The notes under the pieces were generated by a model that saw only the letters and a list, made by a program, of their open reading frames with translations, did no database searches and had not been told where the DNA came from. From Macrostomum lignano (taxonomy: Eukaryota), in the NCBI GenBank assembly GCA_002269645.1, contig NIVC01004337.1, positions 1-49,842 of the forward strand: DNA of 49,842 bases. Direction: 5' to 3'. Position 1 is the stretch's first letter, and every line of letters begins with the position of its first letter. Made by a program: the position numbers and the translations under genes. This document shows positions 5,727 to 34,450 of the stretch, piece by piece.

Positions 5727-7577
5727 ATGGATCCGACCTCCGAATCCCTGCGCGTTCGCCGGCTTCGCTGCCCTACGGTGCCATGCCTACTCTGTCTGTG
5801 CCCAGCGCTTCTGCTGCTCGAGCAGCAGATTCTGCTTGGCGCGCTGGCACTGCTTTGCTGTGCACTCCAGCTGACCCAGGCGAGGGCCCTCATCTTGGCG
5901 AGCACTGGCCTCGGCTCCGTGAAGGATCTGCGCTGGGCTGTAAGCAAATTTCTCAACTCTGACGCGTGTTTGCATTTTGTAGCATTAAGAACACGCCAGG
6001 AATAGCTGTAGAACTATATTATGTAGATTTGGCTTCTCTAAAATGCACCCCACAAGCTACAGAAATGAGTGACATCTTCACTTGTATTTGTATTCCCAGG
6101 ATAAATAGTTGCAGTTTCAATCAAGTTGGTTTTACGGCTTTATAAAAGGGTATTAGAAGCTAATAGAAAAGGTCCTACGCTCGTACTCTGAAAAGAATTT
6201 CAAAACTGGCGCTACATATCACGCCATGTGTGAGGTACGTCAGACCTAAAAATAGACTTTGATCAAACTTTCGTTATCTCTCGCTTTTTTAAGTTTTAAA
6301 TAAAAAACCTTAAACGCAGGGCATTAGCGATTAACCAAGGTCTGCAGAACTTTACTACTTCAACTTTGCCTCAGACTGTGCCCTTTGGCCCTTGGTGGAC
6401 TGTTGAGCTATCGCGTGAAAAACTTAGCAGTGGACTAGACATTTGAAATTTAGCTTGAGCAGACATGCCGGACTTATTGCCACTTTTCCCAGTGTAAAAC
6501 CTTTCTACAACGCCCGTTTCTTTTATATTTCAGCTCCAAATCTACCGCAGGTTACCACTGAATGCTTTCTCTCGCCTTTGGGGCCGCTGCCACCAGCTTC
6601 CGTTACCGTTGTTCGCTCGAAGCCCAGCCTACCGTCTGTACAGCAAGCTATGCAACTGCAACCTCGATGAGGCCGACTTCAATGACCTGCGTGAGTTTCG
6701 CAACCTTTCTGAGTTCTTTAGACGCTCGCTCAAGCCGGAAGTACGGCCCATCTGCCCAGCTGCACGCATTGTCTCACCCGCTGACGGGACTGTGCTGCAC
6801 TTCGGACGTGTAGCGAGTGGCCATGTCGAGCAGGTGAAGGGCGTCACCTACACTCTACAAGGGTTCCTCGGGCCAGACCCTCTCGGAGACAATGGCTCAT
6901 CGGAGTGCTCTACGTCCCCGATGGACCGAAAGCTGCAAGATTCCGAGTACCACGACCATCTAAAGCAAAATCCAGAGAATGAACTGTACCACTGTGTGAT
7001 CTATCTCAGCCCAGGCGATTATCACCGGTTTCACTCATCTGTTGACTGGACAGTGCACAAGCGACGCCACTTCCCGGGCCATCTGCTATCTGTCGCACCG
7101 CGCATCGCAGGCATGATCCGGGGGCTGTTTTGCATCAATGAGCGGGCCGTGTACATGGGCAGCTGGCGCCACGGCTTCTTTTCTTACACGGCAGTCGGGG
7201 CCACTAACGTGGGCTCCATCAGCGTTTTTAAGGATGAGGTAAGAGCTGCTTTTGCTATTCGGATTCAAACATATTTTGTTCCAAAAAATCGACAAGCACA
7301 GACACGAGTATTAGCACTGATTAGATTCTTCATAAAGTTTCTAACTATCACTCGGATCCCCCTTTCACAACAGGAGCTACGAACGAACCGAGGCGGCGCA
7401 GGCTTCCAGGACCGCATTTTTCCTGAAGGAAGCTTTGTTGCAGGCAAAGGCGAGCTTTTTGGCGAGTTCAACCTGGGAAGCACTGTCGTGCTGTTGTTTG
7501 AAGCGCCCAAGAGCTACCGCTTCAGCCTCCGAACGGGACAGAAAATTCTGGTCGGCCAAAGCCTGGGCACCGAGTGA
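5727..7577 (+). CDS. PISD: Phosphatidylserine decarboxylase proenzyme; exons 5727-5939, 6534-7238, 7374-7577 (373 aa)
   Basis: GT-AG introns in phase 0 give a continuous frame: RWA|LQIYRRLPLNAFSRLWGR, FRNLSEFFRR, SPADG (Asp), GDYHRFH (His), AVGATNVGSI and GEFNLGSTVVLLFEAP (LGST autocleavage Ser). The N-terminal start is less certain than the rest. Confidence 0.95.
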
Positions 7578-9534: not shown

Positions 9535-10395
9535 TGAGGCTGACCTGCAGTCCGAGGCCCTGCCTGACCCCCAGAGGGCGGCGCTGTTCCAGGCGGTGAT
9601 CGAGACCGTCCTGTTGTACAACGCCGAGATCTGGGCGTTGACGGAATCGCTCGAACAGCAGATCGATGCAGCGCACGCTGTCCTGCTGCGCGCCGCCATC
9701 AAGATCGGCAACGAGCGAGTCACCAATGCGGCACTCTATCGCCGCATCGGCCTGTCCCGTCCCAGCGAACTGTTGCGCCGTCGACGACTCCAGCTGGCAG
9801 GCCACATCATCTGAGCCGAGTCCTACTGCCCATAGCCGGTGCGGGAGGTGCTGCTGCTGATGCTGAAGGCACCCTACCGGCGAGGACAGGCGCGCACTCA
9901 GCGTTTTGTCGACTGCCTGCTGGCTGATGCTCCTCTCTGATACTCTACGACTACACTTGAGTAGTAGAATTCCTCTCTGATACTCTACGACTACACTTGA
10001 GTAGTAGAATTCCTCTCTGATACTCTACGACTACACTTGAGTAGTAGAATTCCTCTCTGATACTCTACAACTACACTTGAGTAGTAGAATTCCTCTCTGA
10101 TACTCTACAACTACACTTGAGTAGTAGAATTCCTCTCTGATACTCTACGACTACACTTGAGTAGTAGAATTCCTCTCTGATACTCTACGACTACACTTGA
10201 GTAGTAGAATTCCTCTCTGATACTCTACGACTACACTTGAGTAGTAGAATTCCTCTCTGATACTCTACGACTACACTTGAGTAGTAGAATTCCTCTCTGA
10301 TACTCTACGACTACACTTTAGCAGCAATGCGCCCTGGACACTGCCGTCGGGGTGGCCTACGTTCGCGCTCAGGTCCCGAAACGCGCCCTGTGACG
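9535..10395 (+). mobile_element. 3' fragment of an RTE-like non-LTR retrotransposon, interrupted by a tandem array
   Basis: Translation FQAVIETVLLYNAEIW...RRRLQLAGHII...RRGQARTQRFVDCLLAD matches the post-RT C-terminal region of RTE-type LINEs. It resumes after 10330 (PDTAVGVAYVRAQ-like). Contains in-frame stops. Confidence 0.75.
9931..10318. repeat. 40-bp tandem array, 9.7 copies (TCCTCTCTGATACTCTACGACTACACTTGAGTAGTAGAAT)
   Basis: Head-to-tail units with no spacers. Copies 4 and 5 share one G>A change. An EcoRI site (GAATTC) forms at each junction. Confidence 0.98.
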
Positions 10396-16677: not shown

Positions 16678-18494
16678 TTTGATGAGGATGCACTTTTTCC
16701 CAAATCCCGCGCTAGCACATGGGCTCTAAACTTACTAGCCTACTGACAGCAGGCTAAGGGAATTTTTATTCTCTTTTATCTTTTATCGAGATAGCAAATT
16801 TGTCGAACGACTACCAGAATAAAGTAAGACCTGACTCTCAAAATGGCAAAGAAAGTTTGCGACTAAATTATGACTGGAAAGTATCAGGTATCACTTTAAG
16901 AAATTGATCCGCCTACCGCAGAAGCAAATGAGTCTCAAACCGATTCGCAATTGACAACTCCGACAAGGGTAAGCGAAATCGCCCACCGAACAACTGCAGA
17001 ACATGCAAACGCCAAAGACAGGCGCCAAACGTCGGAAAAGTGATCACTTTGCTAAACAGTGCACATTAGTAAAATCAAACAGAATTAATGTTATCGACTC
17101 AGACGATGGGGTAATCCCGTCAGCAACTGAGAATCAAACTACAGAAAATAAGCATCAAAACATTTTGTGCAACGAAACATAAAACACCCCATAAATATCA
17201 CGTCAGACTTGATCCGCGATAACTGAATTGTCCCTTTCTTTATTCAACACAGTCAGCATTTTATGCCTCAAGTCTGGCGCAATCGGAGCAAACATTTGCC
17301 GTGCTTTTCCAGCTGTTCCAACAGATTTTGTGGTACCAAAAGAGGCAGGAGGGGCATTCAATCTAAAATGATGCAGAAAAGGTCTTGCAAGCTGGTTGAA
17401 TCCCTTACTGTTGTACATGTACATGTAAAATGCATGGGTATTTTACATCGCATTAATTTACCCATTCGATTCGCTTCCTTCGGCCAGCGGGCTCCTCCAA
17501 GCCACAGAACCTGCAAATGGGTTGCTCAGTTTCTTCCATGAAATTAATCACAGTATTTTTAATGTGCTGGCAAGCGGCGCTCAATTTCTGCGCAGTGAAT
17601 GCAGACAACACAGTGCACTTATCAAGAAACAAATTGCGGCCAAATAAGCAGGTCAGAACGCCACATGAAAACGTATCTTTTTGCTGGGTGCACATTCTTA
17701 CTACACTTCTAAACTTTCTACCCCTAAGGTGCTCCATCTGCTCAGGGAGAAACGTAGAAGCAGCTGAAGAAGCAAGGAGCTCACTAAAATTAGAAAATGG
17801 CACGTAAGTTCAGTTAATATGCCTTGCAAATTTCAAAGCCCCCCTTCTCGTGTACATTTTACCTACTTCAATTTGGCAGTATAGTTCAATGCCAGTTGCT
17901 TTCTTCTGTCACTCTGACGTATGGAGTCCAGATAGTGCACTGTAAGATCGTCGAAGAAGACAGCCAAAAGCCAAAAATGGCTTTGCGTAAGCATCGGGAC
18001 CAGAATTTTCTTCACTGTCTAAAATTTTTTATAATTAATTCTTCAGAATTATAGAATTGTTGCAGGATTGTTCCACCTCTGCATGTGGATATCAACTATA
18101 CTCGTAGCAATGGTCAATGGTGAAACCAACATCAGATTAAAAGTTAAAATTTCACATTATGCTTACTGCTTGACCAAGGAAATAGTTCCGAAGAGATTCA
18201 ATGTGCTGAGAGCCTTTGCTACCACCGTCTAGCAAGGAAAGAAAATCGCTCTGCTGCATAGCAACTCCATCTGCTCCGCTAGCAATTGCAGCCAAGTAGC
18301 CGTACACAACCTGATAATATTTTTAATACCTTCTACACATTAAATTACGTACATACCGTAATGCTATGACGCAAAGCACTTCCTACAAATTTCTTACCGC
18401 ATAGTCCAGCCAGTTCGTACCATTGAGTGACGCTAATTGCTCTTCTGAAATTGGCGTTCCTCTTACATCTCGTAGAGCCAAAATTTTTGAGCTG

Positions 18495-18872
18495 GGCGGT
18501 TGCTGAGAGTCGCGTGGCAGTTGCTGAGAGTCGCATGGCGGTTGCTGAGAGTCGCGTGGCAGTTGCTGAGAGTCGCGTGGCGGTTGCTGAGAGTCGCGTG
18601 GCAGTTGCTGAGGGTCGCGTGGCGGTTGCTGAGAGTCGCGTGGCGGTTGTTGAGAGTTGCGTGGCGGTTGCTGAGACTCGCGTGGCGGTTGCTGAGAGTC
18701 GCGTGGCGGTTGCTGAGACTCGCGTGGCGGTTGCTGAGAGTCGCGTGGCAGTTGCTGAGAGTCGCGTGGCGGTTGCTGAGAGTCGCGTGGCGGTTGCTGA
18801 GAGTCGCGTGGCGGTTGCTGAGACTCGCGTGGCGGTTGCTGAGAGTCGCGTGGCAGTTGCTGAGAGTCGAGT
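18495..18872 (-). repeat. 21-bp coding minisatellite, 18 copies, encoding (D/E)SQQ(P/L)PR
   Basis: Unit GGCGGTTGCTGAGAGTCGCGT on +. In frame between the transposase ESWF motif and the Ulp1 domain in ORF 18383-19195. Confidence 0.95.
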
Positions 18873-19457
18873 GGCAATTTTGGAAACTCACAGGGGGGAG
18901 GCTGTGACTTTGTTCGTGGTGTCTGCCTATTGTTTGAGTATCTACATCGTTTTTTGCCCCAGCTTTCTTCAGCCCCATCAGCTGTCTCCGCCGCGGCCTT
19001 CCTTTTTCGTTGGCAAAATCGTGGTGGAGCAACTTGCTGAAGTAATTTCGCCTCCTTTATCCTTTCATGACAGAAACTTGCGGTTAATTTCGAGAACTCT
19101 GCGACAGAGACGGGTAGCTGAAATTTGGATTTTATTCTCTTAAACCAGCTCTCAATGTGAGCATTTGAAAAAGGAGACTTCACGCGGCTTTCCAAGAATT
19201 CATGGTTCTAGACGCAGGCAGCCCATAAGGGAAAGTAGGAGAGGTATCGGATGACAAACATTTCGACTATTTCCGGTGAATGCAATTCGTTATCGATAGC
19301 AACTTCCTCCACTTCCACAGTGCTATTAGCGATTGATGTCCTCCATGCATTAAAGTACTCATAAAAGGGCGATCGTTTGTATAATGAACTATTCGTTTCG
19401 TCCTCATTAGTACTGTCATTGTCTTCGTGATCTCCTTCCTCTGACTGTCCGTCTGAG

Positions 19458-19736
19458 CCCTATTGCAGCGCATGGCTTAAGTACGCCAGACGCCTACACA
19501 ACCTGCGCCACGCTGTGAAATGACTTACCTATGAAAGAAACTCTAAAGCAAAATTAACGCAGTTTTGGGTAAACGGCAGGAGTAACTATGACTGTCTTAT
19601 CAAGCCTAAATGCCTCGGCATCTAATTAGTACCGCGCCGCGCCGTACTAATCGCCGCGCGCCGTACGCGCCGCGCCGCGCCGTATTAGATCCGCGCCGGA
19701 CGCCGTCCGCCAAAATGCCCATGCGCTGCAATCAGG
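19458..19736. mobile_element. 279-bp MITE nested in the MULE transposase gene, 8-bp TSD CGTCTGAG
   Basis: Inverted ATTGCAGCGCATGG (19462-19475 / 19719-19732). CGTCTGAG at 19450-19457 and 19737-19744. Excision restores the transposase frame (...GTNSD|GQSEEGD...). Confidence 0.9.
19567..19630 (+). pseudogene. 64-bp fragment of eukaryotic 28S rDNA spanning the R2 / I-PpoI target region
   Basis: GGGTAAACGGCAGGAGTAACTATGACTGTCTTATCAAGCCTAAATGCCTCGGCATCTAATTAGT against the conserved 28S GGGTAAACGGCGGGAGTAACTATGACTCTCTTAAGGTAGCCAAATGCCTCGTCATCTAATTAGT (recalled from memory): about 57 of 64 positions match in a manual alignment. Confidence 0.9.
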
Positions 19737-21158
19737 CGTCTGAGTTGGTCCCTTGCTCATCATCTTTGCTGTTATAGGGTTTGGACATTATACGCTGGCA
19801 TACTTTCGTAGACTTTGTCAAAAAAAAAATGTTCATTGCATCCCGAATTGTTGACTTAACTTCTTCTACAACCTTAATAGTCATAACTCTGTAGAAGTAT
19901 CTCAAAAAAGTGTCCCTGATTCGCTTTGAATACTTCTTCTGCTTTAGATACCGGCTTACTGAATGCATTAGATGATTTGTACAGAGCATTACCCCGTAAC
20001 TGTGACAGAAGTGTTGGCTTTTTCGGAAATAGTAATATTGCATATTTAAATACGTCTCCAAATCGCATTGGTGGAATTCAAAGCAGCTATGTATCAGTGC
20101 CCAGGAAAAGTCTGTCACCTATAGGATTGGTACGTAGGCTTGCCTAAACCGTGACATCATGTTGACGATATGATGGCGCAGAACACGCAAGAAATGTGCT
20201 ATTGATGCGACAGAATGTCCGTTTGTAATGCAGTCTGCTATTGAGACAGATTTCACGCGGTTGGTAGCTGTTGTTACAATAGAGTACAGGAATACGCGTC
20301 CGATATAATCCGCTTTTTTAATTATCGATCCGGTGGCGTTAATATGAAGAACATTAAGCTCATTTTCCTGTATTAGGTCAATTAAATATTGCAGTTGGTA
20401 ACCAGAGTACAAAACGACACGCAGCGGATCTATTAAAAATTTAATAGAAAAAATTACATGTATGCATGTAATTACATGCACAACATGCATCAAAAATGAG
20501 CAGAGCAATAAGCATGAATAAAGCACAAATTTATGTGGTTGCACAAAAATGGCGCACTGGTAGTCAGACACGAAGCCTGCGGAAAATCAGCCTTCAAAAA
20601 TTTTTCCGTAGTTCGTGAGTGCCGAGTCCTTCTTCTCGCACTACAGTGGTCCTTGCCTATATAGCCATTCGTAGACGTCAGTCTCTCACAAAGCCAAAAA
20701 AAATTCTTACTTCTTCCTTGGTAGGGAAACTCATTGAGATGGTGACCAGGAACAAAGCCAAAATGCATATTGACAACCTCATGCCGAAAAAAAACTGTCA
20801 GATGAATTAAGTACCAAAATATGCTAGTGCTTATTGTACTCTTGCCAATATAAGATAGAGATATTGTAGTCAGCAGAGACAATTCATCCATATTGTCAAA
20901 ATGAGCTTGTTAGTGAGAAAGATTATATACCAAAACAGGGTGCAGGCATATTCTGTGTTAGGCCTCTTGCGTAATGTACATGGCAAAATGACAACGAATG
21001 TACATAAAGAAAAACTGCCTCCTATACAGTGTTAATATTGCTGATAGATCTGCCTAAAGTAAAGTGCTTCAGATCGGTAGAAGGCAAATACAAGTATAAC
21101 GTACATTCCATGCCGGTGTCCAAATGCAAGTTAGATATGAGCATGCCTTCAGGCAACC

Positions 21159-21797
21159 GTTGCTAGGGAATATCTCAGCTTGTGAAGTGTCTTTGTGTGT
21201 GTCTGAGGTGTCTTTTTAAAGCAGAGACATGCCTAAAACAGCTGTGCAAATTTCATGCAGAAAGACCAAAGTGGGACGATGTAGTGGCTTCTCAAAAAAC
21301 TACTATATACAGTATTCGGTATATTGGGAAACGTCGTAACAACAGTTGCTAGGGAATATCTCAGCTTGTGAAGCGTCTTTGTGTGTGTCTGAGGTGTCTT
21401 TTTAAAGCAGAGACATGCGTAAAACAGCTGTGCAAATTTCATGCAGAAAGACCAAAGTGGGACGATGTAGCGGCTTCTCAAAAAACTACTATATACAGTA
21501 TTCGGTATATTGGGAAACGTCGTAACAACAGTTGCTAGGGAATATCTCAGCTTGTGAAGCGTCTTTGTGTGTGTCTGAGGTGTCTTTTTAAAGCAGAGAC
21601 ATGCGTAAAACAGCTGTGCAAATTTCATGCAGAAAGACCAAAGTGGGACAATGTAGCGGCTTCTCAAAAAACTACTATATACAGTATTCGGTATATTGGG
21701 AAACGTCGTAACAACAGTTGCTAGGGAATATCTCAGCTTGTGAAGCGTCTTTGTGTGTGTCTGAGGTGTCTTTTTAAAGCAGAGACATGCGTAAAAG
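21159..21797. repeat. Right-TIR subterminal 186-bp repeat, ~3.4 copies
   Basis: GCAGAGACAT at 21221, 21407, 21593 and 21779 (period 186). Copies are nearly identical. Confidence 0.95.
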
Positions 21798-22428
21798 TTT
21801 CTATAAATTCACAGTATCTTGCGTAATAAATAGACAATTTTGTTAAACATTTAATGAACGATTTCTGAATGTCTGTCTGAATGTCTGTCTGAATGTCTGT
21901 CGGGAAACCAATACATCAAAATCCCATTGTTATGCCACCAAAGTTGTCGTGGGGGTTACTTCCTTCTTAATAATATCCCACCTTGTGTTACCAAGCTGTT
22001 ACAGGCATGTTTTCTCTTACTGAAATTATCCCACCGTTATGTCACCAAGCTGTGCTAGGGCTAACTTCTTATACTAATCTTTAAGTATTCTTGTTAAGTT
22101 GGTAGCTGCCACCAGGATTATCCTATTAATAAATTATGTTTATCAATCTTAGAATAATCCAAGAAACATTTCTTAGAATTGATCTGAGTATATATCTTAG
22201 TATTTAGTCTGAGTATTTATCTAAGTATATTGTTCTTAGAATATTATTTAGCCCTTATAATTGTTATTGTTCTCCTATTATTCCAGTAGCATTTACTATT
22301 GTTCTAGTAGCATTTATTATTATTCTGGCCTGAGTAGTCTATTGGCTATACTGGTATATGTATTTCATGTACTTTGCAAGTCCTTGGGCGTTACCAAAAT
22401 CAGAAGGTCATAGCCTCCGGTTATTTTT

Positions 22429-23949
22429 GGGTGCCAAGCAATTTGACTGCCGACAAAATGACTGTGAACAAAATGACTGCGGACAAAATGACTGCCGACA
22501 ATTTGACTGCTGACAAAATGACTGCTGACAAAATGACTGCCGACAATTTGACTGCCGACAAAATGACTGCCAACAAAATTACTGCAGAAATTTGACTGCC
22601 GACAATATGACTGCGGCAATTTGACTGCCAACAAAATGACTGCAGCAATTTGACTGCCAGCAAAATGACTGCAGCAATTTGACTGCCGAGCAATTTGACT
22701 GCCAGCTAAATGACTGCCGGAAAAATGATGCTCCTAAAGTTTAGCACTCTGTCAACCCTTTTAAGTCTATGCATATAGTGAAATATTGTATTTACGAGCT
22801 AGAATGATGCAGAACAGAACACATAACTTTTATACAACAAGCTGTAACAGCTGTTGAAACCCGCGGATTTTGAACAGTGGGAAATGGGAATTCCAAATTT
22901 TGCATATATTCTAAAATCTGAAGTTAAACTCAAGCAAAAACTTTTATTATTAGAGTTAAACATAACATAGATTACATTCGTGTAAAAGTAGGATTGGAGG
23001 CAAACTATTGATATTGTTGGCTGGGGTGCGGCGCAGAATGTCAGAAAAACTCTGGCCTCTACTTCTGCCTCTCGATCCCTATGTTCCTTGCATCCTTTGA
23101 ACCTTCTATCTTCTCTTCTGTTTTCTCACTTCTCTTTTGTCTCTTCTCTCTTGTCTCTGCTCTCTCATTTCCCCTCTCTCATCTGTTATCTTTATTCTCT
23201 TATACTGGTATGTTCTCTCACCTCTCTCCTCTGTACTCTTCTCTTTCCCCTCTTTTGACTCCTCTCTTTCCTTAGTCCTCTTCTTTTCCTTCTTCTATAC
23301 TCTCTCCCCTTTATTCACTTCTCTCGTCTCTCTGTACTCTGCTCTCTCCGCCTTCATCTCTCATCTCTCTCTCTTTTGCATAACAAGAATGCGCCTAGCA
23401 AGTTTTTCAAATTCATTTGTCAATATAAAGCTGTGCACAACTAGGCTAGGCTTTTGGTTTTGGTATTTGTTTGGGGTTTGGAGTCAAATAATAAAAGGAG
23501 AGGGTGATCAGTGGAGCCCACAAGTTTAGGTGGCAAGCAAACTCATAAAACTCCATTGAGAGAGAGAGAGATAGAGAGAGAGAGGCAAACATTGAGGGAC
23601 TGGGGGAGAGAAGAGGAGGAGTGGCCTCTTGTTTTCTATATTGTCAGTAGTCATTTTGCTGGCAGTCAAATTGCCGCAGTCATATTGTCGGCAGTCAAAT
23701 TGCCGCAGTCATATTGTTGGCAATCAAATTTCCGCAGTCATTTTGTCGGCAGTCATTTTGTTGGCAGTCATTTTGTTGGCAGTCATTTTGTCAGCAGTCA
23801 TTTTGTCGGCAGTCAAATTGTCGGCAGTCATTTTGTCCGCAGTCATTTTGTTCGCAGTCATTTTGTCGGCAGTCAAATTGCTCGGCAGTCAAATTGTCCG
23901 CAGTCAAATTGACCGCAGTCAAATTGTGGCAGTCAATTGTCGTAGACCC
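22429..23949. mobile_element. Non-autonomous foldback element with inverted arms of 15-bp tandem repeats (MULE-like by 9-bp TSD)
   Basis: Left arm (~22435-22730) is (CAAAATGACTGCCGA/CAATTTGACTGCCGA)n and the right arm (~23650-23940) is its reverse complement. Ends GGGT...ACCC. Flanks GTTATTTTT (22420-22428) and ATTATTTTT (23950-23958), 8/9 identical. Interior has CT-rich and GA-rich tracts and no transposase motifs. Confidence 0.8.
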
Positions 23950-26900
23950 ATTATTTTTATATGTATCACTTCAGATCTACTTCGTAATTCTCTTACTACT
24001 CAATATTTTCCTTCTCAGTAGTCTATATGGTACACACTTCTGTCTACTTCACTCCCCTATTGGAATAAGTTTCAAAAACCCGCGGACGCGCGACACAGGT
24101 GCCAAAATTGTGCCCTCAAAAGTGCAACGCGACACCAAATTTTATTGACTGGGGGGGGGGCGGCAACGCGCGACACAACACCGATGTCTGTTGACCGAAT
24201 GACTGGGGAGGGGGGGGAAGGACGCCACAGCAGCCACGTTGCAATTGATAATTCTCGTTCTGCTGTTCACTCCCGACACCAAGACCATGGAGCAAGGGAC
24301 AAGAGTATTCCTTTCAATTTCGCGGAAAAAGAAATGAAATTTAAAAACAATAAACAGTAAAACAACAAAGGTACAACAGTTAGAAAAACAGCGCATGCAT
24401 TGTAACTAACAAGTAACATTTCTAAAAATTATATTTGAAGTATTAGTTATTTTACCGTCAAAATAAAAAAGAACAATTCAAGAATTAGTTTTTATCAAAC
24501 ATGTTTGAAACATTTAAATACTGAGAAACAACCGTGAACATATTATTACAATGAAACACAGTTTGCGAGGTTTTGGCTACAGATCTAGGCCGCAACGCGA
24601 CACATGACGACACCAGCCGCCAAGTTGCCACACTTTTGCGTCTTGTGTCGTGTCGCGCGACATGACGCATGATGATACCAGGTTTCCACAGTGTCGCGCG
24701 ACGCTACACACCACTTGAGACCACTGTTGCGCGACGCGACACCAGGAGAATCCAAAAATGCGATGGACGGTAGTCTGGGTTTTGTCAACTTATTCCAATA
24801 TGGCTTCACTCTTATTTCAACAAATAAAAAACTCGGAAAACATCTTTCAATATTTACTTGAAACACTTCTTAACTATATTACTGTTTAAACTGCAAAAAC
24901 AAATTGTGAAACGAGACCAAACAGGTTGCTCTTCTCTCAGCAAAATTCGCTTCTATTTATACCAATTTTTAGGTCTAGTTTTAACAAAAAATAAATTGTG
25001 AAAATATTTTGGAAAATGTGAATAATAAAACAAAATGTCATTCTTAGTTTTAGCACAAGTTTAAAATGCGTACTAGCAATTGAATTTTTTACATAAAATG
25101 AGAAGGGCCTTCCTCATAATGTTATAGTAATAAATTTCTATAAATAATAAATTTGTCAACTTAAGTTTAGTATAAAAAAGTATAGCAACGTAATTCTTAA
25201 AACTAGTATGCCATTGAAATTGAGTGAAAGCTACTGTAAATTAATTATTTTAAATAAATTAAATTAAATTAAATTTTAAATTATAGATTTGTTAACCTAA
25301 ATTTTTCTTATGGAAATGCTGTGCTTTTTTGCTGGGTTTTTAATGCTTTTTTGATTCACCTTTGTGAAATGTATGATGTACAAAACCTAATTAATCAAAA
25401 ATCAAAATTTCAATAATAAAAAATTGAAATTGAATATATTCGAGTATAAAAACTTAAATCTGCACTTTTTAATAGTGGACTTTGTGGGTGCTCAGATCAT
25501 TGGCACAAATTGGAGCTTACTTAATTGAATACTTGTTTAGCAAATCATGTAATCACAAATGTATTACAAATCATGAATCAAACAACATGCAGTTGACAAA
25601 TTTTACCTGTTGACAAATTTACTAGTTGACGAATATACTACAGTTGACAGCAGTTGACGAGTCTACCAGCACCTATAGCCTATAGGCTATATGCTAGGCC
25701 TAGGCCTATTAGCCAATAATATATAGCAAAATATTATTAACATTGCTTTAGGACTTTCACTGACATTGCTAGCTATTATTATTACAAGCTATAGCAATAT
25801 ATCTATGATTATATATAAATAATATTCTATAGGCCCTCTATAAATTGCAATAAATATTTATAACAATCAATGTCTATCAACTTAAATGCTTTATGGACTT
25901 TTATTTCTTTTCTTTTTTATCTCTCCTTTTTTCTTACTTATTTCTAGTGTTCTGTCATAAGGAGGGTCCATGTACCGTAGCCATAGCCATAAGCAAGACT
26001 AAGCAAAACTACGGCTTACTCCAATTCTCCATAATCCGTAGCCATAGGGACCCCGAAATTACCATATTCCCGTAGTTCCCATAGCCATAGTTTTAACAAA
26101 AAGTCTAAAAAACAAAATATTTGAATAAAGAAGATAACCTAGTGCTTAAACAACTGCAAATTAAATTAGAAAATAAAAGAAACACTTAATTGTCTTTAAG
26201 ATTATATTTTGTCTTTTTTCAGAGCAACAATGCTTAATCGTTATTGAAAGTACTAATGCTAAAAATTTTACACATTAATAAAAATTAGAGTTTGCTAGTG
26301 TTTTATTGTATATTTTATAAGTTTCTAGGTTGATAATACAGTTTACTAAAAGTATCTTTGTTTTACTCTACATGTTTCTAATATTCTTTTCAATTTTTAA
26401 CATTAATAACTATGGCTACGGGAATCTACGGAAAGTGACAGCAACTACCATATTTCCATAGTCGTAGCCGTAAGAGCAGCTAGCTACCGTAGGCGTATCC
26501 GTAGCTACCATAGGCACCTATTTTACTGTATTTTCTGTAGGATCCCGTAGCCATAGCTATGGCTACAGCAGAACACTAGCATTATCATTATCACCTGTTT
26601 TTTGTGCTAATATGTCAAATTGAATTGCCAATATATTTTTGTTTTCTACTCTGTTTAGCCACTATCTGTGCTTAAATTTTCTGTGCCAGTGTGGTGAGCT
26701 AGATTTTCTATGCCACATTAGAGTCTAGTAGGGCTTTCTCTATAATAATCATAATGATGCCACCAGCTATGGTAGGGCTACTTCTTCAAATTCCTACCCT
26801 GTAAATTTCCTAAACGCTACCACCAAATTTGTAACAGTACTGATTTCTGTTTTATTTAATTTATTCCACTGCTGACACCAAAGTTGTTCTAATAGTCCCC

Positions 26901-33210: not shown

Positions 33211-33811
33211 AATGACATTAGTGCGTGCAGTACCGTATATATAGTTCCAATAATTATAAAAAGTTATATACCCCATGTGCTCGCTCTTAATTATAAGTTT
33301 TAGAGTTTTGCAATTTCAGGCAATTGCATTCTGTGAGATCGGAACTTTAAGACATTCATGGACTTCTTAATTACATACATGTGGGTGTTAAAGATTAATT
33401 GAATTTCCTGATAATAGTAGTTGCGCTGCATGAGTTTCGTTTGTTATTAAAAATGAAAAAGATGATTGTAGGCCGAAGACCTTTCATATTTAAGATATTT
33501 GAAATTCTTTTCTAAACGTAAGATGATCAAATTGAAATTTCTTGGACATATTTTTCTTGTGAGTCATAAATTGTTCTGTTCTCCATTCATTAGGTTAGAA
33601 CTTCAGGTCGAAATTCCCGAAGCGATCCAAAACCATTCAGTTGTACTTGAGATAACATAAAAGGCAAACTCAAATATTACCACGAGCGTAGCTTTCGATA
33701 ACTTCAAAATGGCGCAGCCAATTCTATGAGTCCCAGCTTCCGCAGTCTGCACAGGGCGATAGCAACTACTTTTGCTTGTTTGTTGATCATCTTGCTTCAC
33801 TGATGCTACAA

Positions 33812-34450
33812 ATGGCACTAGAATCCCATAACAATGGCACTAGAATCCCATAACAATGGCACTAGAATCCCATAACAATGGCACTAGAAGCCCAGAGAAA
33901 TGACACTAGAATCCCATAACAATGGCACTATAGAAACCCATAGCAATGGCAATAACACTAGAATCCTGGCTATGACACTAGAAGCCCAGAGAAATGGCAC
34001 TAGAAGCCCAGAGAAATGACACTAGAATCCCATAACAATGGCACTAGAAGCCCAGAGAAATGACACTAGAATCCCATAACAATGGCACTATAGAAACCCA
34101 TAGCAATGGCAATAACACTAGAATCCTGGCTATGACACTAGAAGCCCAGAGAAATGGCACTAGAAGCCCAGAGAAATGACACTAGAATCCCATAACAATG
34201 GCACTATAGAAACCCATAGCAATGGCAATAACACTAGAATCCTGGCTATGACACTAGAAGGCCAGAGAAATGGCACTAGAATCCCATAACAATGTCACTA
34301 GAAGCCCAGACAAATGGCACTAGAAGACCAGAGAAATGGCACTAGAATCCCATAGAAATGGCACTAGAATCCCATAACAATGGCATTAGAATCCCATAAT
34401 AATGGCACTAGAATCCCAGAGAAATGGCACTAGAATCCTATAGAAATGAC
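33812..34450. repeat. 22-bp minisatellite (AATGGCACTAGAATCCCATAAC and variants) with higher-order blocks
   Basis: Units read directly. The block AATGGCACTATAGAAACCCATAGCAATGGCAATAACACTAGAATCCTGGCTATGACAC recurs three times. Confidence 0.95.

Follow-up and report, generated by a model that had tools for sequence, protein, structure and literature searches.

Pokey and mPok, which belong to the piggyBac superfamily and occur in Daphnia, are DNA transposons with MITE derivatives that are tied to one region of the 28S rRNA gene. In these respects they resemble a 279-bp element, here called E1, in the genome of the flatworm Macrostomum lignano. Pokey and E1 are linked to the same 28S region, both contain internal rDNA-derived sequence, and the termini of both begin with CCC. 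Unlike E1, however, Pokey duplicates TTAA and inserts into a TTAA of the 28S gene, and its rDNA-derived part consists of intergenic-spacer repeats. E1, in contrast, is flanked by 8-bp duplications, lies outside the rDNA and carries a piece of the 28S core itself. Another parallel is provided by Pack-MULEs and by the filler that gap repair leaves in hAT, P and Mutator elements, in which, as in E1, the interior of a non-autonomous element with terminal inverted repeats (TIRs) is short, decaying host DNA. The difference lies in what has been captured, which in E1 is rDNA and not a protein-coding gene.

Sequence from rRNA genes serves as an internal module in SINE28, in the 5S-derived SINEs and in the TRIMs Cassandra and Ajax (Table 2 of a 2024 review on rDNA-derived parts of transposable elements), and E1 is like them in this respect. 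All of these are retroelements, whereas E1 has TIRs. The modules derived from 5S provide a Pol III promoter, and SINE28 uses a different part of the 28S gene than E1 does. Fish R2 lineages (Kojima, Seto and Fujiwara 2016) are like E1 in that a degenerate 28S copy adjoining the R2 site is found within a mobile element. In the fish lineages the retrotransposon RNA includes this copy, which probably aids annealing to the target, whereas the copy in E1 sits in an unrelated DNA transposon and extends to either side of the nick. No TIR element carrying a fragment of the 28S core is listed in the 2024 review, and none of Pokey/mPok, SINE28, the 5S SINEs, Cassandra/Ajax or the fish R2 elements is a TIR element that combines an 8-bp target-site duplication (TSD), a 28S core segment and a destroyed nick motif.

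The requirements of an R2 protein for its 28S target have been defined for R2Bm of the silkworm. R2Bm recognizes an upstream motif, RUM, at positions -34 to -22 relative to the bottom-strand nick, where 28S reads A-31 ACGGCGGGA-22; AWWWGCNNNA is the consensus obtained by selection (Wilkinson et al. 2023, PMC10499050). The nick motif, RASIN, has the form T-6 T N A-3 N N T+1; the bottom strand is nicked between TTAAGG and TAGCC, and the distance between RUM and RASIN is critical (PMC10499050). Changing T+1 to A abolishes cleavage in vitro, and changes at -6, -5 and -3 cripple it (PMC10499050). The top strand is cut 2 nt upstream of the bottom-strand nick. R2Bm comes from an insect and belongs to the D clade; the R2 proteins of flatworms may be different from it.

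Boundaries and host of the element

The window, that is, the whole stretch of DNA that was analyzed, comprises 49,842 nucleotides of M. lignano contig NIVC01004337.1 (assembly GCA_002269645.1). E1 occupies positions 19458-19736 on the plus strand and is identified as a non-autonomous, MITE-like TIR element by its sequence, a repeat finder, comparison with surrogates and the host reading frame that is restored when it is removed. The boundaries proposed in the initial annotation are thus borne out. A perfect copy of CGTCTGAG stands on each side, at 19450-19457 and at 19737-19744, in agreement with the 8-bp TSD reported earlier; the repeat is exactly 8 bp long and the bases adjoining it are unlike, and the right copy is seen both in the sequence and by the repeat finder. 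The repeat finder also delimits TIRs of 18 bp, CCCTATTGCAGCGCATGG at 19458-19475 on the plus strand and CCTGATTGCAGCGCATGG, its reverse-complement partner, at 19719-19736 on the minus strand, which are identical at 16 of 18 positions. What had been described as 14-bp inverted repeats is the perfect 14-nt core, ATTGCAGCGCATGG, of these longer, imperfect ones. A blind scan with 12-nt seeds and a perfect 8-bp direct repeat found this layout of TIRs and TSD in none of 200 Markov surrogates of the window. A TSD called by the blind scan at 1971-2529 was rejected as a palindromic octamer within a long hairpin. The window also contains a near-perfect hairpin element of ~625 bp at 1938-2562, whose 201-nt arms are 99% complementary and which has a 33-nt perfect inner pair in addition.

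E1 has the structure of a MITE, being short (less than ~800 bp), bounded by TIRs and a TSD, and without coding capacity, with open reading frames (ORFs) of only 41-55 amino acids. The earlier designation as a MITE therefore stands for the short, non-coding TIR/TSD structure; as to copy number, the single copy of E1 itself is all that was seen within the 50-kb window, where searches with BLASTN (word size 7) and nhmmer, using the whole element and its three parts, found no other. Patterns for the TIR pair and for the altered 28S site were absent, as expected, from metagenome, prokaryote-genome and viral contigs, collections that do not contain M. lignano. When the concatenated six-frame translation of E1 was compared with 5.8 billion proteins, no relative appeared among the best 8000 candidates, which were probably swamped by Arg/Ala-rich frames, and a protein look-up returned no exact record of the 41- or the 55-amino-acid ORF. 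Assembly GCA_002269645.1 is covered by a protein-indexed collection with conservative eukaryotic gene calls (two genes in 20 kb); at a strict E-value cut-off, no second contig carrying the 229-amino-acid scramblase of the window is on record. A literature search found no published description of an E1-like family. The published repeat annotation of M. lignano dropped models that were short or unclassified, and the 2024 review contains no such TIR element. An E1 family, if real, is therefore probably undescribed.

The host of the E1 insertion, at 18386-20586 on the minus strand, is a decaying ORF of a large, uncharacterized family with a D..D..CxxH..E-like (transposase-like) arrangement. When E1 and one copy of the TSD are deleted, two ORFs on the minus strand join into a single frame that has 2 stops in 638 codons, compared with 34 stops in each of the other two frames. 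E1 is thus a genuine cut-and-paste insertion into coding sequence. The motifs FDATGSIIKK, VTDFSWALI and CxxH are common to the host ORF and two ENA proteins; the host ORF also contains a NAHIESWFKRIK-type motif, before which these two shorter proteins end. One ENA relative has 949 cluster representatives as its own relatives, and members of this family are ~25% identical to the host ORF, with E-values down to 1e-25. Since all the relatives of the host ORF show this low identity, none of them is from M. lignano. The core of the host ORF has no match in Pfam or the PDB, and the C-terminal end of the long members of the family is an OTU protease domain. A ULP-protease-like motif downstream of the host ORF was considered and discarded, because it is unsupported by Pfam and the long relatives have the OTU domain instead. 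The host ORF looks like a decaying gene for a DDE-type transposase, and its family may be an unclassified transposase family. A 21-nt tandem repeat (18 copies, 93% matches) that encodes in-frame PRDSQQP heptads is present in the host ORF at 18495-18875.

The restored frame also bears on the age of the insertion. Under simulated substitution, the probability of finding at most two stops in this frame is 0.16 at 5% divergence, 0.02 at 8% and 0.005 at 10%, which limits the neutral divergence since disruption of the host ORF to less than ~8%. All 16 bases of the target duplication are intact, which fits a young insertion. The insertion of E1 into the decaying transposase-like frame is thus fairly recent.

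The genes in the remainder of the window are ordinary for an animal and include those for phosphatidylserine decarboxylase, a scramblase and an SH3 protein, as well as a Wnt exon and C2H2 zinc fingers. The phosphatidylserine decarboxylase gene (5727-7577) can be modeled as a 373-amino-acid protein with a unique single-intron solution, the intron spanning 5919-6647. Tandem arrays are found at 9931-10318 (40 bp, 9.7 copies, 99% matches), at 21154-21796 (186 bp, 3.5 copies, 98% matches) and at 33811-34448 (22 bp, 28 copies, with a 160-bp higher-order period).

A sister element and the transposon group

The blind scan and a scan for the terminal motif identified a second TIR element, E2, at 24055-24803 on the plus strand, at a distance of 4.3 kb from E1. 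E2 is 749 bp long and has a perfect 8-bp TSD, CTTCACTC, at 24047-24054 and 24804-24811. Its ends are CCCTATTGGAATAAGTT and, at the other end, CCATATTGGAATAAGTT. The first eight bases of E2 are those of the left end of E1, CCCTATTG, and a terminal CC(N2)ATTG is common to both elements, whereas their interiors are unrelated. E1 and E2 thus represent two families within one group, which has termini CC(N2)ATTG and 8-bp duplications, and transposases of one kind presumably mobilized both. The terminal form of elements of this type can be written as CCCTATTG...CAATAGGG, again with 8-bp duplications. An Rfam search found no rRNA-like piece in E2. Given that E2 has the same termini and an 8-bp TSD without an rRNA piece, the 28S block of E1 is cargo that is dispensable for mobilization. 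Subterminal repeats of the GCGCGACAC type are present in E2. A foldback-like structure lies at 22426-23927 and consists of two inverted arrays with ~20 copies of a 15-nt unit, TGACTGCCGACAAAA; its arms are 245 nt long, 93% complementary and ~980 bp apart.

The duplications and termini of these elements were compared with those of known superfamilies. hAT elements make 8-bp TSDs with the consensus nTnnnnAn and have termini of the form 5'-YARNG. The TSDs of E1 (CGTCTGAG) and E2 (CTTCACTC) are of the hAT length, and each fits the consensus at only one of its two positions. The termini, CCCTA and CCTGA in E1 and CCCTA and CCATA in E2, do not have the YARNG form. Duplications of ~8 bp are also made by P, Merlin, Zisupton, Novosib and some Mutator elements. 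Membership of E1 in hAT is not established, and its 8-bp TSD would suit any of these groups, hAT included. The TTAA duplication of piggyBac and Pokey is absent, as the flanks of E1 and E2 are 8-bp repeats without TTAA.

The pseudo-28S block and its lesion

In the middle of E1, at 19567-19630 on the plus strand, a block of 64 nt in rRNA sense corresponds to positions -36 to +28 around the R2 bottom-strand nick (numbering from PMC10499050). It agrees with the eukaryotic large-subunit consensus at 54 of its 64 positions and is unchanged in length, the references for this comparison being the Rfam consensus and a metazoan 28S sequence rather than the 28S of M. lignano itself. The chance of such a match, corrected for search space, is ~1e-14, so that the 64-bp stretch of 28S sequence noted earlier is true homology, and its position identifies it, as had been proposed, with the segment targeted by R2 and I-PpoI. 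The Rfam model LSU_rRNA_eukarya aligns with 19522-19637 (model positions 2200-2314; 26 bits, E=2.6e-4). Because this score is below the gathering score of 50, the block is a fragment and not a gene; it neither scores as a 28S gene or pseudogene would nor extends past its short length. Extensions of the homology upstream and downstream are not significant (shuffle p=0.20 and p=0.16, respectively). We accordingly rejected a graded, partly conserved 28S fragment of 116 nt beginning at the Rfam start, 19522, as the extra 45 nt match no better than shuffled sequence. Across the window there is no rRNA gene, no other Rfam family above threshold and no rRNA-like sequence beyond the E1 block.

The ten mismatches are at block positions 12, 28, 34-39, 41 and 52. 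Seven of them fall within 8 nt (19600-19607), a degree of clustering with a probability of ~6e-5, and the other three are scattered, just as the initial annotation had described. The ten differences thus reduce to about four events, namely one cluster and three point changes in the 56 nt outside it, of which two are in the upstream part (33 nt) and one in the downstream part (23 nt). The change of TTAAGGTAGCC to TTATCAAGCCT is exactly as claimed. Three point changes and one complex event are compatible with neutral decay, and the changes may have been inherited from the donor or made in place.

As rRNA, the block is broken: the helix across block positions 12-30 has pair-breaking, non-compensatory changes, and the Rfam score is below the gathering score. 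One seemingly compensatory pair in the downstream hairpin overlaps a palindrome of E1's own and was rejected as evidence of RNA function. This palindrome (19625-19651), found by the repeat finder and seen in the centroid fold, has 13-bp arms, ATTAGTACCGCGC and GCGCCGTACTAAT, the left of which begins in the last bases of the 28S block. We know of no promoter within the 28S segment that contains the R2 site. To the right of the block the repeat finder detects GC- and CpG-rich units of 19 nt, about three copies of a CCGCGCCGCGCCGTACTAA-like sequence, at 19631-19687 on the plus strand (19631-19684 by TRF). The CpG-dense CCGCGCCG repeats in this part of E1 (19631-19705) resemble rRNA expansion-segment or spacer sequence, and could be further rDNA-derived cargo.

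Mapped on the R2Bm target, the block retains the upstream motif but not the nick motif. The equivalent of RUM (-34 to -22; 19569-19581 on the plus strand) reads GTAAACGGCaGGA and has a single change, at -25, a position without base preference in R2Bm. Within it, 19572-19581 is AACGGCaGGA, the lower-case letter marking the change at the free position, and the distance to the nick is unchanged. The block therefore has the same RUM, by the -34 to -22 rules, and the same spacing as the canonical 28S target. What sets it apart from that target is the loss of the nick motif and its occurrence as one dispersed copy away from the rDNA. In the equivalent of RASIN (-6 to +1; 19597-19603 on the plus strand) TTAAGGT has become TTATCAA, with A-3 changed to T and T+1 to A, so that the required bases at these positions are lost by the rules of R2Bm, a D-clade protein of the silkworm and not of a flatworm; the nick would fall between 19602 and 19603. 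These changes are part of a rewritten segment at 19600-19607 on the plus strand (-3 to +5), in which AGGTAGCC has been replaced by TCAAGCCT, with seven of eight bases different from 28S and no net change in length. The site had been said to be altered at the cut position, and it is: the lesion runs from -3 to +5 and changes two of the four required bases of the nick motif, including T+1 to A. It lies in the 11 bp that are melted by the R2 enzyme. The other point changes are at -9, in tolerant spacer, and at +16, in dispensable downstream DNA. Taken by the R2Bm rules, the site in E1 could be recognizable yet not nickable. The 15-bp site of I-PpoI, CTCTCTTAAGGTAGC, is also lost, as 19592-19606 reads CTGTCTTATCAAGCC and matches at 8 of 15 positions. 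A visual comparison of the 8-nt rewrite with the reverse-complemented 28S site revealed no convincing microinversion or templated switch as its source.

Origin and significance of the block

Our preferred reading, to which we assign a probability of roughly 60%, is that E1, a non-autonomous transposon, acquired its pseudo-28S cargo passively and underwent one complex mutation. While an ancestral TIR element was undergoing gap repair or template switching, filler or template sequence would have been copied into it from rDNA, which is very abundant. The 64-bp piece would thereafter have been passive cargo in the middle of E1, with no function assigned to it, and the eight-base rewrite from -3 to +5 would represent a single complex deletion-insertion event. 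That E1 inserted into the decaying transposase-like reading frame and broke it is shown. Capture of filler or template DNA during repair occurs in other DNA transposons, and we propose the capture route for E1 by analogy with these. Passive acquisition is in line with the view, expressed in the 2024 review, that modular rDNA pieces in transposable elements are mostly products of reshuffling without benefit.

Two coincidences speak against pure chance in what was captured and where it was altered. One is that the block spans the whole R2 recognition module, starting 2 nt outside RUM. The other is that the only complex lesion sits on the staggered R2 cut, for which the probability by chance is ~12%, since of the 57 possible placements of an 8-nt lesion in the 64-nt block, 7 include the nick. 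The first coincidence is weakened by ascertainment, because the segment with the R2 site is among the few 28S pieces that are readily recognized, and also because at 84% identity only the conserved core of 28S is detectable. The second is unaffected by this ascertainment. A possible but tentative alternative is that an endonuclease of the R2 type, or another one specific for the 28S site, broke the DNA and that end joining then produced the rewrite. The break would have been made in an rDNA unit prior to capture or in an ectopic target borne by E1. Such a scar would be compatible with functionless cargo. The lesion covers the bottom-strand nick between G-1 and T+1 as well as the region of the top-strand cut 2 nt upstream, and small end-joining scars are often compact deletion-insertions of zero net length change, like this one. 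With RUM and the spacing intact, the unscarred version would have been a complete substrate of the R2Bm type, and R2 and other 28S-specific non-LTR elements are known from the flatworms Schistosoma, Schmidtea and Clonorchis. However, this is one event in one copy, with a placement that chance alone would produce in 12% of cases; moreover, the analysis yielded no evidence for active R2 in M. lignano, and the window contains neither R2 sequence nor rDNA.

Other explanations fare worse against the same observations. A very unlikely origin of the block is the 28S-mimicking UTR and junction of a 28S-specific retrotransposon, captured later by E1. 28S-like stretches of lowered identity are documented in the 3' UTR inside fish R2 elements, and such a junction could look like an altered site with 28S-like sequence on both sides. 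In E1, though, divergence in the upstream part of the block (2 changes in 33 nt) does not exceed that in the downstream part (1 in 23 nt), unlike in fish R2, the length is exactly kept, and retrotransposon sequence next to the block is absent. The initial annotation had also raised the idea that the element disperses decoy or cleavage-resistant copies of the site. In a selected version of this idea, an E1 family would disperse R2 sites that can be bound and not cut, titrating R2 or protecting something, and selection would maintain the block. Binding without cutting is conceivable as a prediction from the R2Bm rules, given that RUM and the spacing are kept and the nick motif is disabled. This idea is weak, and we regard it as highly improbable: the RUM consensus is degenerate and already occurs 68 times in the 50-kb window, or on the order of a million times when extrapolated to the 764-Mb assembly, and extra copies borne by an element would add little as a sponge. 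Furthermore, the sister element E2 lacks the block, E1 is a single copy within 50 kb, nothing points to conservation of the block, and it is difficult to see how selection would favor a host benefit arising from scattered, selfish copies. There is next to no probability that the TIRs and direct repeats, or the likeness to 28S, are coincidental and that nothing was inserted. The sole support for such an artefact is that a single copy was seen, and against it stand the 0 of 200 surrogates, the restored reading frame, the match at 54 of 64 positions and the existence of E2 with the same termini.

As it stands, E1 with its passive cargo is another transposon with a scrap of rDNA, and what makes it a curiosity is that the whole R2 module is present with only the nick motif destroyed. 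We consider it unlikely that a multi-copy E1 family spread the complete R2 module outside the rDNA and that flatworm R2 cut these ectopic sites. If this were true, copies with independent nick-centered scars or with truncated R2 insertions would be expected. Should copies across the genome have independent lesions at the nick, or junctions with R2, they would document ectopic activity of the R2 endonuclease in vivo. Such copies would also amount to a naturally occurring mutational scan of RUM and RASIN, motifs that current work is engineering for gene insertion with R2. They would provide a natural, genome-wide record of R2 action off the rDNA, and could point to a possible route by which flatworm R2 lineages leave the rDNA.
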